A stretch of DNA of 63,302 bases, the filler included, from Octopus bimaculoides (taxonomy: Eukaryota), in the NCBI RefSeq assembly GCF_001194135.2. It is 9 parts of 8 records of this genome, joined end to end, with 100 filler letters (N's around TTAATTAATTAA, not from the genome) between each part and the next. Parts side by side here need not be neighbours in the genome. Positions count along the whole stretch, not along the records: positions 11,386 to 21,272 come from NC_069003.1; 8 more parts are not named here. One strand, written 5' to 3'. The notes below the pieces were generated by a model. That model was given only the letters and a program-made list of their open reading frames with translations, was not told the origin of the DNA and did not search any database. This document shows, in pieces, positions 14,016 to 21,399 of the stretch (the first letter of the stretch is position 1; each line of letters starts with the position of its first letter). Made by a program: the position numbers and the translations under genes.

Positions 14016-14324
14016 CCGTGGCAGACTGGGTCTAGAAATATTGGTTGCCAGGAGACTAAGGGGGCCCACCCACAGCTACAAGGGGGCCCACCCGCAACTA
14101 CAATGCTATCATTTAATTTTTTTGGTTAAAAGTATTCTTTTCAACTGTCTACAAACACAGCCAGGCTGAAATAATGCATTCTTCCAAGAGTGAATAAGAA
14201 AATTCTGAAACTTGAGTGGATGGGCCTCTAGATACTAACATGGGGCCCTGTATATGGATTCTAATGGCGCAGCAGGGGCCCACTTGTCATCGGGAAAACC
14301 TGCAACCTGGCCAGTCTGCCACTG
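14016..14324. mobile_element. hAT-like MITE
   Basis: 14-bp TIRs C(C/A)GTGGCAGACTGG. 8-bp TSD AACATATT/CACATATT (7 of 8 match). Confidence 0.8.
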
Positions 14325-14773
14325 CACATATTAATGTCAATAATAAGACTTCCTGCGTTTTCTGGCCGGTGCTACTTTGGTGTGTGATCTACAACTTCAA
14401 GGGTGATTACTCTTCGTTAGTTTTAGTTTCTTTATGTTGCAAAACTCGTGGCTGCCAAACTTGTGTGATCTACATGCTTATTTCAAGTATCGCATTGTTT
14501 ATTCTTGGTTTGTTATTATTATTCGCTAAGAGATAAATGGAATATGGTTTCATTATTATTAAAATACTAACAGTTTTGAAAAAAATACATTTACAATGTT
14601 AAGTGTGTACCAAAGAATTTATTGTAAAAACATCTTTAGCCAACAGTTAAGGGTTTTTAGAAATTGGAAAGTAAACTAAAAAGTAACCTAAAGTAATCTC
14701 CCTTTAGGTTATAGATCACACGCCGAAATAGAGACTTACTTTCGGAAGCAATAAAACTGTTGGGAACCTTATT

Positions 14774-14983
14774 CTTTTCTACTCTAGGCACAAGGCCCGA
14801 AATTTGGGGTGCGGGGAGGGGCCAGTCGATTAGATCGACTCCCGTACGGAACTAGTACTTAATTTATCGACTGCGAAAGGCAAAGTCGACCTCGGCGGAA
14901 TTTGAACTCAGAACGTAAAGACAGACGAAATACCGCTAAGCATTTTGCCCGGCGTGCCAACGTTTCCACCAGCTCGCCGCCCT
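14774..14983 (-). mobile_element. tRNA-derived SINE family A, full length, with TSD
   Basis: Head GGCGGCGAGCTGGTGGAAACGTTGGCACGCCGGGC with B-box GAGTTCAAATTCC. TSD ACTGTTGGGA(A)CCTTATT at 14756-14773 and 14984-15000. Confidence 0.9.
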
Positions 14984-15538
14984 ACTGTTGGGACCTTATT
15001 GAGAATATTGTAGTTTTTCTGTGGATTTGGCCTCTTAAAATGTTGGGAATTCAATACTGGTAGTATTGAAGGTGCAGTCTTATGAGATAACATCTTTGAA
15101 AACTATATTCTTTGTTAAACATTTGACATCTGTTCTTCCTTGAGAGAGGTTTTCATAATTTACAATTATTTTAAATAATAATTGAATATCGAAAAGAATC
15201 TAAAACAAAACCCGTCTAATTTTTATTCTGTTACGGTAGGATCTCTTTGGTAAAGCTTTAACAAGTCTTATTTTTGTATTTTAGATTTTAATTTTTATAT
15301 CAGAGAAACGTTCTTGTGGTTCGATTTGAACCCATAGCAGACTAGCTGAACGTGCTTGTGGTTGGATTTGAACCCATAGCAGACTAGCTGTATCACTCAT
15401 CTGTAGGTTCTAGAAACATATAGGAAGTGTAGGAATGTTTGAGGGTTAAAGAGGTTCGTTTCACAATCAGTCGGCCATGTAAATATACACATATACACAC
15501 ACATCTAAACAAGAAAGGGAACCACTTCTAATACTTAC

Positions 15539-15656
15539 CAATTTAGCTTACAGGCAGAGCAAGACGATTTACAGTTTGTAAGCATGTAAACCGGATTTAT
15601 GTCACATTCGCCACTTTTGGCCCAGTGAGCACATTTAGCGTTATTATCAATGCAGG
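15539..15656 (-). CDS. ShKT-domain exon, most 3' copy: (P)CIDNNAKCAHWAKSGECDINPVYMLTNCKSSCSACKLN
   Basis: Acceptor cttctttatttgcag|CC and donor TG|gtaagt; 118 nt, phase 1 to 2. Cys spacing C-x6-C-x8-C-x10-C-x3-C-x2-C with WA..GEC..NP.YM, typical of ShKT. Not in the ORF track. Confidence 0.9.
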
Positions 15657-15745
15657 CTGCAAATAAAGAAGTGAACAGGAATTCTAATTTAGAAATAATA
15701 CATTTCTAAATCTCTCAGAGAGATTTATGCAGTTGTGATACGATG

Positions 15746-15952
15746 AAGTAGTTGTATGCTGTCAACTTAATGTGACAGTCCCCTGAAGGGAATAATACTA
15801 CTGGGTGGAGGTGCTTGTCTCCCCCTTGTAAACAAGGACACAGGAAATGTGTCAAGGCCGACAGGAAGCGGTGCAACTTCCTAGGTCTAACTAACAGTAA
15901 TATTATTCCCTTCAAGGGACTGCCACATTAAGTTGACAGCATACAACTACTT
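15746..15952. mobile_element. Hairpin MITE with approximately 58-bp TIRs
   Basis: AAGTAGTTGTATGCTGTCAACTTAATGTG..ACTG at 15746-15803 is the near-perfect reverse complement of 15895-15952. Confidence 0.8.
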
Positions 15953-16235
15953 TAGGAATTCTGTTTTGTTATAAATGTAAAATAAAGCATTTACTGGAGG
16001 GAGAAGGAGGTAAAGGAAGATAGAGAGAGAGAGAAAGAGTGTGTGTGTGTGTGTGTGTGTAAACAATTAGATGAACCCCATTACATACCTGGTAATATTT
16101 TATCGCCCTTAGAATTTTAAGAGAAGAGTTCAATAAACTACAACAAACAATTTTGCTTCAGTATTATCACCCACCACTGGCACCACCACAATCACAATCA
16201 CCACGCCAATTAAGATGGTAATAATAATAATAATA

Positions 16236-16630
16236 ATCCTGTTTACTGGAAGCACAAGACATCAAATTTGGGGGAAGGGATTAAGTCGATTACATCAAGA
16301 ATAGTGTGTAACTGGTATTTATTTAATCGACTTCGAAAGAATGAAATACTGCTTAGCATTTCGCCCAGCGTGTTACCGATTCTGCCAGCTCACCACCTTA
16401 ATAATAATAATAATAATCCTTTCTACAGTAGGCACAGGGCCTGGAATTTTGGGGAAGGGTATGAGTCAATTACATCGACCCCAATGTGTAACTGGTACTT
16501 ATTTAATCAACCCCGGAAGGATGAAAGGCAAAGTCGACCTCGGTGTAGTTTGAACTCGGAACTTAACGATGAAGGAAATGCCGTCAAGCCTTTTGCCTGG
16601 CGTGCTAATGATTCCGCCAATTCGTCGCCC
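16236..16630 (-). mobile_element. Two tandem family A SINE copies
   Basis: About 16236-16395 and 16420-16630, both similar to 14774-14983. Confidence 0.8.
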
Positions 16631-17044
16631 TACCACCATTCATATCATATTAAAGAGAGAATACCTGTGTGGTTTTGCACCTGTTGGCTTCTCCCCGAGG
16701 GCGTAGTGTGGAGATATTTTACCATAAGAGGACAATGAAATAAAACGGAATTTTGCCGTTCAAGTTTTACACACACACACACACACACACATTTAAGAGA
16801 ATGATGAATAACTTCACACTCGTGGCTTGCGGGTAACTCCGAGTATTGTACTCACCATTCCGAAATCAACACCAATCCTAACGCCCATTTCTTAAATTCC
16901 TTTCGCTATGAAATATTTGGAGGGTGTTTCTATTACATTTTGTTTTTAAAATCCTGTTAGTTTTCAAGAGAAACAACAGTAGGAAACGGGTGGAGCAGGA
17001 AAATTGAATAACAACCGGGTAGAAGAAGCCAAAGATAAACTTAC

Positions 17045-17185
17045 GTTCAACTACTCCTGGATTCAAAGGCTGAGAGTCACACAACTGACAAGAGTTTTTA
17101 CAGTAACTATGCATGTATATAGGATTCTTGTCACATTCCCCGTTATTGGCCCAATGAGAACACTTCTCATTTTGATCAAGACAAT
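17045..17185 (-). CDS. ShKT-domain exon: CLDQNEKCSHWANNGECDKNPIYMHSYCKNSCQLCDSQPLNPGVVE
   Basis: Acceptor ttattgtcgatttcag|AT and donor GAAC|gtaagt; 141 nt, phase 1-1; six Cys in ShKT spacing. Confidence 0.93.
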
Positions 17186-17339
17186 CTGAAATCGACAATA
17201 ATAATAATAACAACAATACCAATATATACCAATGGCCTACCAATGTATACAGTGAGTTTCTTTGTCCTAGGTGTTGGGAAGACACCCAGCAAAAAATTGA
17301 AACAAAATTGAAAGAAGTTAATAATAATAATGATGATAA

Positions 17340-17480
17340 TAATAGGCACAAGGCCTAACATTTGGCAGGAGGGGTAAGTCGATTGCATCAGCCCCAGTGT
17401 TTCACTGGTACTCATTTTATCGACCCCGAAAGGATGAAAAGCAAAGTCGACCTCGGCGTCGATTCTGCCAACTCATCGCC
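17340..17480 (-). mobile_element. Family A SINE, internally deleted
   Basis: Tail and head segments match 14774-14983. Confidence 0.7.
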
Positions 17481-17869
17481 CTATCACAATTCATATCATA
17501 TTCAAGAGAGAATACCTGTGTGGTTTCACACCTGTTGGCTTCTCCCTAAGGACGTAGCGTGAAGATATTTTTCCAGAAGAGGACAATGAAGGAAAATAGG
17601 ATTTTTGCCGTTTAAATTTCATATGCGCGCGCGCGCGCACACACATTTTGGAGAATGATGAGCAACTTCACACTCGTGGCTTGTGGGAAACTCCGAGTAC
17701 TGTACTCACCATTCCCAAATCAACACCAATCCTAACGTCCATTTGTTAAATTCCTTTCGCTATGAAATATTTGGAGGGTGTTTCTATTACATTTTGTTTT
17801 TAAAATCTCCTTACTTTTCAAAAGAAACAACAGTAGAAAACGGGTGGAGCAGGAAAAATGACAACTTAC

Positions 17870-18010
17870 GTTCAAATCCTACTAAATCTGAATTTGTGGA
17901 GCCGCACAACCAACAAGATTTCTTACAGTTACTATGCATATATATAGGGTTCTTGGCACATTCTCCGATAAAGGCCCAATAAGAACACTTCTCATTTTGA
18001 TCAAGACAAT
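17870..18010 (-). CDS. ShKT-domain exon: CLDQNEKCSYWAFIGECAKNPIYMHSNCKKSCWLCGSTNSDLVGFE
   Basis: Acceptor gtcgatttcag|AT and donor GAAC|gtaagt; 141 nt, phase 1-1. Confidence 0.93.
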
Positions 18011-18040
18011 CTGAAATCGACAATAATAATAATGATGATG

Positions 18041-18090
<50 letters not shown>

Positions 18091-18094
<4 letters not shown>

Positions 18095-18330
18095 TGTTGG
18101 TAGTGCACAGAGCCTTCCACCCTAAGAGTGATGCTGCTGTACTTGTTTGGAAGAAAGTTTGTAAGAAGTTTGATCAGTTGCCAGGATTGTATCGAAACAG
18201 ATGAAAACAGCTTATATAAGAATTACCGTGGAACCATTGTTGAAGCATTTGAAGAAGTCCGGCGTCATTAAAACTGATAATTGTGTAAAGAAAAGAAAAC
18301 TTAAAGAGGAAAAGAAAACACACACGTACA

Positions 18331-18366
<36 letters not shown>

Positions 18367-18650
18367 GAAACAGCATGGAAGGGGGAAAAATGTGCGGTCA
18401 GTTTGCAAGAGATACGGAAAATCGGTGGCAATGAATGCGGAGGAGTGATCTGTAGATGAGGACAGAAGCTCTTATATACGCAGCACAAGAACAAGCGTTA
18501 AGGACTAACTATGTGGAGTGCAGTATCGACAACACTACCGACAGCGACAAATGCAGAATGTGTGGTGAGATGGGTGAAACGATATGGCACATCGTTAGCG
18601 AATGTCCGAAATTGGCACAACGCGAATACGAAAAAAACGACATGACAACG
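18091..18650 (+). mobile_element. R4/Dong-like non-LTR retrotransposon fragment (RT thumb to CCHC knuckle)
   Basis: HRAFHPKSD.. followed by TEALIYAAQEQALRTNY..DKCRMCGEMGETIWHIVSECPKLAQREY. Disrupted by stops and a (CA)n tract; preceded by (AAT)n. Confidence 0.8.
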
Positions 18651-18850
18651 GCACAAAAGCCTGAAATTTGTGGGGAAAGGAATAGTCGATTACATCGACA
18701 CCAGTGTTTCACTGGCACTTAGTTTATGGACCCCGGAAAGATGAAAAGCAAATTCGACCTTAGCAGAATTTGAACTCAGAACTTAGCGATGGGCGAAATA
18801 AGTTAAGCTGTTTGCCCGGGATGCTAACGCTTCTGCCAGCTCGCCGCCTT
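18650..18850 (-). mobile_element. Family A SINE
   Basis: Head ..GGCGGCGAGCTGGCAGAAGCGTTAGC and matching tail. Confidence 0.8.
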
Positions 18851-19225
18851 GATGATGATAATGACGACGACGATGACGATGATGATTATGATGATAACAA
18901 TAACAACAACAACAATAATAATGGTTTCAAGTGTTGGTTCAAAGTCAACAAGACCACCCCACCCACAATCATTTTAGAGAATGATGAATTACTTCACACT
19001 CGTGGCATGCGGGTAACTCCGAGTACTGCACTCACCATTCCCAAATCAACACCAAGCCCCACCGGCCATTTGTAAAATTCCCTTCGCTATAAATTATTTG
19101 GAGGGTGTTTTTATTACATTTTGTTTTTAAAATCTCGTTAGCTTTCAAAAGAAATAACAGGAGAAAACGGGTGGAGCAGGAAAAGTGAAGGACAACCGGG
19201 TAGAAGAAGCCAAAGATAAACTTAC

Positions 19226-19366
19226 TTTCAGATACTCCTGGAACGTGAGTGTTAAAAGGACACATGTTACAAGATTTCTTACAGTTTGTATACATGTAGC
19301 TAGGGTTCTTGTCACATTCCCCGATAGTGGCCAAAAATGCGCAATCTTCATTTTGATCAAGACAAT
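19226..19366 (-). CDS. ShKT-domain exon: CLDQNEDCAFLATIGECDKNPSYMYTNCKKSCNMCPFNTHVPGVSE
   Basis: Acceptor gtcgatttcag|AT and donor GAAA|gtaagt; 141 nt, phase 1-1. The conserved Trp is replaced by Leu. Confidence 0.92.
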
Positions 19367-19427
19367 CTGAAATCGACAATGAAAATAATAATAATAGTAA
19401 TAATAATAATAATAATAATAATCATTA

Positions 19428-19665
19428 TTTCTACTCTAGGCACAAATTTTTTGGGAAAGGGGCTGATATCTATTTCATCGACTCGAAAGGGTGAAAGGCA
19501 AAGTCGACCTCGGCGGAATTTGAACTCGGTATGTAGCGGCTGACGAGATACCGCTAAGCATTTCGCATATCGACCTCGGCGTGGTTTGAACTCAGAACTT
19601 AAAATGAACGAAATGCCGCTAAGCTTTTTGCCTGTCGCGCTAACGATTCATCCAGCTTGCCGCCC
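19428..19665 (-). mobile_element. Family A SINE with partial internal duplication
   Basis: TCGACCTCGGCG..TTTGAACTC occurs twice (about 19505 and 19570). Confidence 0.75.
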
Positions 19666-19800
19666 TACAATCATTCATATCATATTAAAGAGAGAATACC
19701 TGTGTGGTTTTACACCTGTTGGCTTCTCTCTGAGGGCGTGGTGGGAAGATATTTTTCCATAAGAGGACACTGAGGGAAAACAGGACTTTTGCCGTTCAAG

Positions 19801-19867
<67 letters not shown>

Positions 19868-20241
19868 NNNNNNNNNNNNNNNNNNNNNNNNNNNNNNNNN
19901 NNNNNNNNNNNNNNNNNNNNNNNNNNNNNNNNNNNNNNNNNNNNNNNNNNNNNNNNNNNNNNNNNNNNNNNNNNNNNNNNNNNNNNNNNNNNNNNNNNNN
20001 NNNNNNNNNNNNNNNNNNNNNNNNNNNNNNNNNNNNNNNNNNNNNNNNNNNNNNNNNNNNNNNNNNNNNNNNNNNNNNNNNNNNNNNNNNNNNNNNNNNN
20101 NNNNNNNNNNNNNNNNNNNNNNNNNNNNNNNNNNNNNNNNNNNNNNNNNNNNNNNNNNNNNNNNNNNNNNNNNNNNNNNNNNNNNNNNNNNNNNNNNNNN
20201 NNNNNNNNNNNNNNNNNNNNNNNNNNNNNNNNNNNNNNNNN

Positions 20242-20296
<55 letters not shown>

Positions 20297-20318
20297 CAAT
20301 AACAACAACAACAACAAC

Positions 20319-20358
<40 letters not shown>

Positions 20359-20359
20359 G

Positions 20360-20590
20360 GTATAATAAAAAAATATTCAGACAAATACATAACAAAAACA
20401 CCAGGACTTACAAATATATATAACATACAGAAAATTGCACTACTGGGCACAGCACACATCCTACGCAAGACACTTGCAATACAGTAACCATAAGAGCACC
20501 ACAGCAAACTACAGCACATAGCCAAGGCACACAGAGCTGCGCTCGGTAGTGAAGTGAAAGTACGTTATGAAAATAAAACTACTGAATAAT
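20360..20590 (+). mobile_element. R4/Dong-like element 3' end
   Basis: ..YNIQKIALLGTAHILRKTLAIQ* followed by a short UTR and a (TAA)n tail. Confidence 0.8.
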
Positions 20591-20629
20591 AATAATAATA
20601 ATGATAATAATAATAATGAATAATATTAA

Positions 20630-21040
20630 TGTGGGGAGTAGAGAGAGGCAAGTCGTATGAGCATAAACTGCAGAGAAGGGTGGAGTCACAGACCTGAAAC
20701 ATCCTCTGCACTTTTCCAAGAGATTATTCACTTCACAGAAGACAGTATCAGAAATATGAATAAAAAGATAAGCAATAGAAAAGAAACAGGGCCTGGTAGT
20801 GTAGGGAGACGTTGGATAAAAGAAAGTTTAGCAGGTGCCATAAATTAATCGCAGATCAATTTAATGCATTGATTGATGGCGAAGAAGAAATGCTGGGCTG
20901 GTTGACAAAGGGACGAGTAGTGTTGTGTCTTAAGGATGAGTCTGAAGGAAATGCTGCCAATAATTACAGGTAAATTTCTTGCCTGTCATTAATGGAGAAG
21001 TTACTGTCAGGAGGAATTGCAGAAGAACTGTCTAGAACCC
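20630..21040 (+). mobile_element. R4/Dong-like RT N-terminal fragment
   Basis: GPGSVGRRWIK..QFNALIDGEEEMLGWLTKGRVVLCLKDESEGNAANNYR*ISCLSLMEKLLSG, a decayed version of the PG.D..W / NYRPITCL..WKLLT motifs. Confidence 0.75.
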
Positions 21041-21114
21041 TAAACATTTTGGTCGCTAAATCGTGTTGGCTGCTGCACCCACGCACCAGTTAAGATACCC
21101 AGAGAGAGAGAGAG

Positions 21115-21159
<45 letters not shown>

Positions 21160-21203
21160 GAAAAATGTAACAAAAAAACAAACAAACAAAACTGTATTCT
21201 TAC

Positions 21204-21255
21204 TGGAATTGGCGGCATCTGATATAACCTGATCGATGGCAGAGTCTGCAGACAC
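21204..21255 (-). CDS. Candidate upstream exon of the ShKT gene (VSADSAIDQVISDAANS if phase 0 to 1)
   Basis: Acceptor atttaatcacttttag|GT and donor TCCA|gtaaga; 52 nt. All three frames are open; phase 0 to 1 fits the ShKT acceptors. No recognisable homology. Confidence 0.35.
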
Positions 21256-21399
21256 CTAAAAGTGATTAAATANNNNNNNNNNNNNNNNNNNNNNNNNNNN
21301 NNNNNNNNNNNNNNNNTTAATTAATTAANNNNNNNNNNNNNNNNNNNNNNNNNNNNNNNNNNNNNNNNNNNNTATATATACATATATATATATATATAT

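Follow-up and report, generated by a model that had tools for sequence, protein, structure and literature searches.

Does a run of small ShKT (ShK toxin-like) exons in the genome of Octopus bimaculoides encode a venom toxin precursor, the tail of an enzyme, or a free-standing array of ShKT domains? This question is raised by four exons on the minus strand of a 63,302-nucleotide stretch of DNA (filler included; hereafter the window), which was joined from 9 parts of 8 records of assembly GCF_001194135.2. The exons lie in the part that comes from NC_069003.1 (positions 11,386 to 21,272; hereafter the piece), and all positions are those of the window. An earlier note, made from the sequence alone, had read them as a secreted, ShKT-only cephalopod protein that grew by exon duplication. 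We find that the four-exon pattern is genuine and that three of the exons belong to a gene already annotated in this species, and we consider it probable that the piece holds the 3' two-thirds of a gene, either that of the annotated protein A0A0L8HE40 or a merged neighbour, for a secreted, uncleaved multidomain protein with ShKT domains only.

Four in-frame ShKT exons and the annotated gene

A scan of all six frames of the piece with the six-cysteine pattern gave exactly four matches (19364-19260, 18008-17904, 17183-17079, and 15654-15550), which lie in the exons named E1 to E4 in Table 1. The cysteine spacing (C-x6-C-x8-C-x10-C-x3-C-x2-C) is identical in all four, and all six cysteine columns are invariant in a 28-sequence alignment of such modules. 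A pyrimidine tract plus AG stands before each exon and GTAAGT after it, and all four are entered in phase 1. The junctions are in frame as the earlier note had proposed, with splicing yielding GVSE-N-CLDQ, GFE-H-CLDQ, and VVE-P-CIDN. In the Pfam check suggested in that note, the predicted spliced E1-E4 product matched the ShK family (PF01549) in four stretches (E = 7e-27), and each exon also passed alone, with scores of 35.3 (E1), 29.9 (E2), 33.6 (E3), and 34.0 bits (E4) against a gathering cut-off of 20.9 bits. The four-exon ShKT pattern is therefore genuine and far beyond chance, and the exons lie on the strand and at the coordinates first reported. E1, E2, and E3 each consist of one 35-residue, three-disulfide ShKT module plus an 11-residue linker in a symmetrical exon that is also left in phase 1, so that any combination of them splices in frame.

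The closest database match was UniProt A0A0L8HE40, an automatically annotated "ShKT domain-containing protein" of O. bimaculoides with 310 aa. Its residues 178-310 are 100% identical to the translation of E2+E3+E4, including the C-terminal …CKLNW; the attribution to a cephalopod protein is thus borne out, and E2-E4 belong to an already annotated gene and are not a discovery. The Pfam domains of this protein are four ShK and nothing else, and its N-terminus resembles a signal peptide by eye (a hydrophobic MALVRACVSLLLIALFYNYATVQ-VSA, ending …VQVSA). Residues 1-177, comprising the signal peptide, a pro-region ending in RFRR, and a first ShKT domain followed by a linker of five PNPxVxE copies, have no counterpart in the piece and must derive from an upstream paralogous copy. 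The RFRR at the end of the pro-region is a furin-like site. In residues 136-176, which are encoded outside the window, the 8-residue PNPxVxE motif that is seen once after E3 occurs in five tandem copies, a 24-nt coding microduplication. An exon extending into the intron, suggested by tblastn placing the first-domain linker of A0A0L8HE40 on intron sequence, was rejected, as this linker is the five-fold tandem copy of the motif.

Upstream of E1, a leader exon was recognized by tblastn through its 75% identity to residues 24-43 of A0A0L8HE40, the stretch that stands right after the predicted signal peptide; the annotated protein uses a paralogous leader (VSADSAIDEVILDAANS, versus VSADSAIDQVISDAANS in the piece). 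The leader exon, E1, E2, E3, and E4 form a single open frame of 198 codons that ends at a TAA. The edge of the piece (21272) lies 17 nt upstream of the leader exon, and a signal-peptide exon is expected beyond it. Both the leader exon and E1 are without annotation in the UniProt model and are new details here, their use as exons being predicted from the sequence. Downstream of the leader exon stands an (AG)27 run.

Table 1. Coordinates of features in the NC_069003.1 piece (window positions; a slash marks an exon border)
Feature	Position	Strand	Details
Leader exon	21255..21204	minus	52 nt, encodes VSADSAIDQVISDAANS; acceptor TTTTAG (TTTTAG/GTG), donor TCC A/GTAAGA, exit phase 1
ShKT exon E1	19366..19226	minus	141 nt, phase 1-1; encodes (N)CLDQNEDCAFLATIGECDKNPSYMYTNCKKSCNMC + linker PFNTHVPGVSE
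ShKT exon E2	18010..17870	minus	141 nt, phase 1-1; A0A0L8HE40 residues 177/178-224
ShKT exon E3	17185..17045	minus	141 nt, phase 1-1; A0A0L8HE40 residues 225-270
ShKT exon E4	15656..15539 (15656..15535 including stop)	minus	118 nt; entry phase 1; (P)CIDNNAKC…CSACKLNW, then TAA
Putative 3' untranslated region	15222..15534	minus	ATTAAA from 15292, AATAAA from 15227
Conserved proximal intron, unit 3	16800..17044	minus	equivalents 17640-17869 (unit 2) and 18960-19225 (unit 1); 89-93% identical
Tail of another tandem unit (unit 0)	19675..19827	minus	directly 3' of the gap; 91.5% identical over 153 nt to unit 3; includes (TG)n run
Assembly gap	19868..20241	minus	374 N; predicted extra ShKT exon (exon 0) + proximal intron
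SINE-like repeat copies	~14866-14995, 16284-16411, 16464-16643, 17377-17470, 18684-18862, 19484-19678		
Microsatellites	19805-19867, 20242-20358, 18022-18092, 19384-19422, 21101-21155		gap begins in one and ends in another

The 3' end of the gene and its domain content

The earlier note had given phases of 1-1 for E1 to E3 and 1-2 for E4. This holds for E1-E3 and for the entry of E4; the phase-2 donor of E4 probably does not stand, as the exon end …AAT TG/GTAAGT reads in frame as AAT TGG TAA, with the TAA (15537-15535) overlapping the GTAAGT. The C-terminus of A0A0L8HE40 coincides exactly with this TGG TAA, which makes E4 most likely the last coding exon, with no splicing onward. Poly(A) signals follow 245-310 nt past the stop. 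In the putative 3' untranslated region, a 42-nt unit occurs twice at 15307-15390 with 95% identity (AACGTGCTTGTGGTTCGATTTGAACCCATAGCAGACTAGCTG).

No ShKT or other Pfam domain was detected in the 4.1 kb downstream of E4 by pattern scan and by Pfam search of X-joined frames, the latter of limited sensitivity, and the same kind of search of the whole minus strand of the piece (three X-joined frames) recovered no Pfam domain but ShK. A catalytic domain, which the earlier note had not seen in the window either, was thus found neither in the piece nor in A0A0L8HE40. These results bear on the possibility that the exons encode the C-terminal end of an enzyme (astacin, CAP, VWA-containing, etc.) with catalytic exons upstream, or that the gene continues past E4 via the GTAAGT, which we regard as very unlikely. 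Such a tail would have parallels, as close relatives include astacin-ShKT and VWA-ShKT proteins and in O. bimaculoides itself the ShKT repeats of astacins number up to four (PMC6409789), and the 5' end of the gene does lie beyond the nearby edge of the piece; yet the leader exon matches residues right after the predicted signal peptide of A0A0L8HE40, which leaves no room for an N-terminal enzyme. Likewise, continuation through the G/GTAAGT, a consensus donor, is opposed by the poly(A) signals after the stop, by the searches above, and by the annotated protein, whose domains are all ShK and whose end coincides with the TAA. The secreted and ShKT-only nature of the product is not seen directly in the piece and is supported by the annotated model together with the homology of the leader exon. 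The ShKT-only reading of the earlier note is strengthened accordingly: the annotated protein has nothing but ShK, the leader matches the stretch after a predicted signal peptide and joins E1 in frame, and the frame of E4 ends at a stop codon.

Tandem duplication and a probable fifth exon

The exons E1-E3 sit in tandem units of about 0.8-1.4 kb, with start-to-start spacings of 1356 and 825 nt, the longer unit carrying inserted repeats. An acceptor context of (ATT)n-GTCGATTTCAG is common to the three exons, as are some 250 nt of intron downstream of them, then a (TG)n run and a tail of 150 nt. The array thus grew by tandem duplication of a ~0.8-kb exon-plus-intron unit, in line with the exon duplication proposed in the earlier note. 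E4 is an older, more diverged copy: its introns are unrelated to those of E1-E3, and its synonymous sites are saturated against them. Every exon lies between microsatellites, with an (ATT)n run shortly before each ShKT acceptor and a (TG/AC)n run some 250 nt downstream.

The assembly gap upstream of E1 is flanked by an (ATT)39 run above (20242-20358) and by a (TG)n run plus unit tail below (19827-19675). The distance from the exon start of unit 3 to its (TG)n run is about 394 nt, in agreement with the 374 N of the gap. Because of these flanks and this distance, the gap has the right size and place for a ShKT exon, and it is likely that a fifth ShKT exon with its proximal intron is hidden there.

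The young copies differ more in their exons than in their introns. Among pairs of E1-E3, exon identity is 71-79% versus 89-93% in the adjacent intron (Fisher p = 2e-5 to 5e-4), and nonsynonymous differences per site over whole exons amount to 0.18-0.26, about 2.4 times the intron value (p = 4e-4 to 9e-3). In the ShKT core only, the ratio to the intron is 1.4-1.9 (p = 0.04-0.5), and identity in the 34-nt linker is 47-56%. The ratio of nonsynonymous to synonymous rates (dN/dS) in the core is 0.27-0.44 among E1-E3, and 0.34-0.44 for E1 versus E2 and E3. Synonymous differences in codons for the same amino acid (15-20% versus 7-11% in the intron, p = 0.04-0.5) are not clearly elevated, and an elevated synonymous rate (Nei-Gojobori dS of 0.4-0.65 among E1-E3) was dropped following this conservative count. 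The total and nonsynonymous exon excess stands and is largely linker-driven; diversifying change in linkers and loops and intron homogenisation by gene conversion both fit it. The proximal introns of units 1-3, which are more conserved than the exons, reach 97-98% identity in places over 30-nt windows, and this could be due to gene conversion, to a splicing or regulatory element, or simply to faster exon change.

Tandem exon and gene duplication, phase-1 exons that can be mixed and matched, and the ~2.4-fold exon divergence are signs of a fast-diversifying cluster. That they mark an octopus-lineage cluster of fast-diversifying, ShKT-only secreted genes, possibly an unrecognised salivary, venom, or mucosal effector family, is a speculative proposal to which we give a low probability.

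Module fold, dyad residues, and a possible toxin role

The E3 module was modelled with AlphaFold2 from the 28-sequence alignment (modules from database matches), and the model reached a predicted local distance difference test (pLDDT) score of 92-94 across the 35-residue core. In the ShKT family, the six cysteines pair as C1-C6, C2-C4, and C3-C5. The best PDB matches of the model by Foldseek were 2mcr (template modelling (TM) score 0.88, root-mean-square deviation (rmsd) 1.0 Å, 46% identity) and 2k72 (TM 0.78, 40%), and these alignments were gap-free over 35 columns, with rmsd of 1.0-1.2 Å and the same cysteine spacing. A profile search of PDB sequences also found 2mcr (2.5e-10) and 2k72 (5e-9), and the match of the profile to the sea-anemone ShK entry 2k9e was marginal (E = 0.82).

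The channel-blocking dyad is defined as Lys22-Tyr23 in ShK numbering (PMC6409789). In the gap-free alignment, in which 2mcr has Lys-Tyr, the Lys position is occupied by S (E1), I (E2), I (E3), and V (E4), and the Tyr is retained in four of four modules. The dyad is thus missing as first claimed, the residues only having been listed in a different order (I/I/S/V). The modules are neutral to acidic, with net charges of -2 to +1 each, and the readable mature product (leader plus E1-E4) has a mass of about 21.7 kDa and an isoelectric point of 5.0. With both the dyad Lys and the basic charge missing, a classical ShK-type pore block is unlikely, although the missing dyad does not itself exclude channel modulation, since the MMP23 domain modulates Kv1 channels without it (PMC6409789). 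No dibasic or other obvious cleavage site was seen in the linkers PFNTHVPGVSEN, GSTNSDLVGFEH, and DSQPLNPGVVEP, the only KK pairs being inside the fold, and the product therefore most likely stays a single chain. The linkers of the E1-E4 product (11-12 residues) also contain no N-glycosylation sequon and no Ser/Thr-rich tract, with Ser plus Thr at 12% overall.

We consider it improbable, on these grounds, that the gene encodes a venom or salivary toxin precursor whose modules act on prey ion channels like sea-anemone ShK, NEP3, or the ShKL proteins of Cumia. The closest folds are, by PDB title, an ShK-like immunomodulatory peptide (2mcr) and a potassium-channel-blocking domain (2k72), but the dyad Lys is absent from all four modules, none of which is basic. 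There are known examples of secreted venom proteins with several ShKT domains (PMC5832418, PMC6409789), and the MMP23 precedent shows that the dyad can be dispensed with; the octopus product, however, has no processing sites between its modules, and we found no paper that ties an octopus ShKT-only protein to venom or that names the accession. Amino-acid-changing exon divergence at ~2.4 times that of adjacent introns is a pattern met in toxin and immune genes, but here most of the excess falls in the linker, and the ShKT core shows it only weakly.

Weighing the gene model

Several points count against the gene model that we favour. The A0A0L8HE40 model skips E1 and takes its N-terminus from DNA outside the piece, where the predicted signal peptide itself also lies; either two tandem paralogues may have been joined in this model, or E1 and the leader may be skipped or dead relics. 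Neither E1 nor the leader exon occurs in any protein of a 5.8-billion-sequence collection, where E1 was found only in the window's own open reading frame (ORF). The GTAAGT next to E4 fits the donor consensus perfectly, E4 itself escaped the Pfam scan of X-joined frames, which may have passed over small exons of other domains as well, and the function as a multivalent binder, set out below, is purely inferred.

Some of these points lead to a further alternative, in which only E2-E4 are expressed, as annotated, and E1, the leader, and any exon in the gap are relics of a decayed tandem paralogue in a long intron. We hold this to be possible but rather unlikely. It agrees with the annotated model, which passes over E1 and has the other leader, and with the absence of E1 from database proteins; E1 is also the sole copy without the family's nearly invariant Trp, which is at least 90% conserved in the 28-sequence alignment. 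A decayed exon, on the other hand, would hardly be expected to have the top Pfam score of the four (35.3 bits), an intact frame with six cysteines and consensus splice sites, or a core dN/dS against E2 and E3 that is well short of ~1, and the leader exon retains both of its splice sites and the correct phase. The UniProt model, moreover, is an automatic prediction.

We therefore retain, as probable, a gene for a secreted, ShKT-only, uncleaved multidomain protein. In such a gene, the array would grow by duplication of the ~0.8-kb unit, giving at least three young copies, and probably a fourth in the gap, before the older terminal copy. The product would remain a single chain with four or five ShKT knots and not be released as separate toxin-like peptides. 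This chain, whose modules retain the conserved helical core and the Tyr, would act as a multivalent extracellular binding protein and not as a ShK-type pore plug, as the missing Lys and basic charge suggest.

Repeats in and around the introns

A SINE-like (short interspersed nuclear element-like) repeat of about 150 nt (…GGCGAGCTGGCAGAA…GAGTTCAAATTC…GAGGTCGACTTTGCCTTTCATCC…) fills the introns in at least six copies and in both orientations. Scans of the piece for tRNA (ARAGORN) and Rfam families gave nothing, this repeat included. In intron 1, an 88-codon open frame on the plus strand (18456-18719) has a weak match to zf-RVT (PF13966, E = 8e-4, 20.5 bits, below the cut-off of 27.5) and is probably the C-terminal remnant of ORF2 of a non-LTR (long terminal repeat) retrotransposon; this remnant and a SINE copy explain why unit 1 is ~530 nt longer. 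Intron 3 holds an inverted repeat resembling a miniature inverted-repeat transposable element (15746-15803 and 15895-15952), with 58-nt arms that are 95% complementary and 91 nt apart, about 90 nt upstream of the acceptor of E4.

Significance

The domain family is very large, the gene is an ordinary member of it, and as it stands the gene matters little, since the family, the layout of one module per exon, and the protein itself are already in public databases. What is new concerns details: E1 and the leader exon, the probable exon in the gap, a stop within what looked like the last donor, a UniProt model that may be chimeric, and exons that outpace their introns. For annotation, the value lies in an unlisted ShKT exon and leader, a probable fifth exon lost in the gap, and the possibility that the UniProt model joins two tandem paralogues. 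For the literature, the gene would be a small counter-example to the reported lack of ShKT-only genes in molluscs, and a fast-diversifying ShKT-only cluster, if true, would contradict their published near-absence from mollusc genomes (PMC6409789). Should expression turn out to be gland-specific, the gene, with its fast-diverging exons, would be a reasonable candidate for a new cephalopod secretory effector family.

Comparison with known ShKT systems

At E<=1e-3, an exhaustive search with the ShKT product gave 3851 representative proteins, 73 of which passed E<=1e-30; every match was via the ShKT region. A search with the N-terminal 98 residues of A0A0L8HE40 for paralogues or orthologues that carry the leader gave no match, A0A0L8HE40 itself included, and is uninformative. 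Ten close relatives were inspected, six of which are ShKT-only, two astacin-ShKT, and two VWA-ShKT proteins. Two distant matches were an intron-less ORF on a 1.16-Mb metagenome contig (P0002) and a 1.1-kb Logan transcript (P0003), neither of which informs the structure of the octopus gene. A literature search for octopus or cephalopod ShKT-only proteins gave nothing specific, and A0A0L8HE40 appeared in no paper. Gerdol et al. (2019) describe ShKT-only genes as otherwise missing from mollusc genomes, bar one Biomphalaria protein, and mention O. bimaculoides only for its astacins (PMC6409789).

The known ShKT-only examples are gland- or nematocyte-secreted (PMC5832418, PMC6409789, PMC2563036). 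They include the NEP3 family of Nematostella, secreted proteins with three ShKT domains that are cleaved between domains (PMC5832418), the salivary ShKL and multiShKL proteins of the snail Cumia reticulata (PMC6409789), and, in nematodes, the PHAT proteins of Caenorhabditis elegans and the SXC mucins of Toxocara, in which ShKT domains are combined with Ser/Thr-rich linkers (PMC2563036). The octopus gene would resemble NEP3, multiShKL, PHAT, and the SXC mucins in having a signal peptide and several ShKT domains and nothing else, its signal peptide being predicted and lying beyond the piece; we found no evidence of common descent with any of them. It also differs from NEP3, which is cut between its domains, in having no cleavage motif, and from PHAT and Tc-MUC, which have long Ser/Thr-rich mucin linkers, in having linkers as short and as poor in Ser and Thr as described above.

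The closest structures share the fold of the octopus modules and differ in their setting. The entry 2mcr is BmK1 of a Brugia malayi metalloproteinase and 2k72 is the toxin-like domain of human MMP23, both single C-terminal modules of metalloproteinases, whereas the octopus modules form a free-standing array; in addition, 2mcr has the Lys-Tyr dyad, compared with S/I/I/V-Tyr in the octopus. With the sea-anemone ShK toxins, the octopus modules share PF01549, the six cysteines, and the conserved Tyr, but those toxins are single, basic mature peptides of about 35 residues with Lys-Tyr, in contrast to at least four modules in one acidic chain without the Lys.

In their exon layout, the octopus modules follow a familiar rule. 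Extracellular modules spread by exon shuffling, such as EGF and kringle, are typically of class 1-1 (Patthy's rule). E1-E3, in each of which a whole disulfide module is bounded by phase 1 at both borders, are a textbook instance of this class and in this respect nothing unusual.

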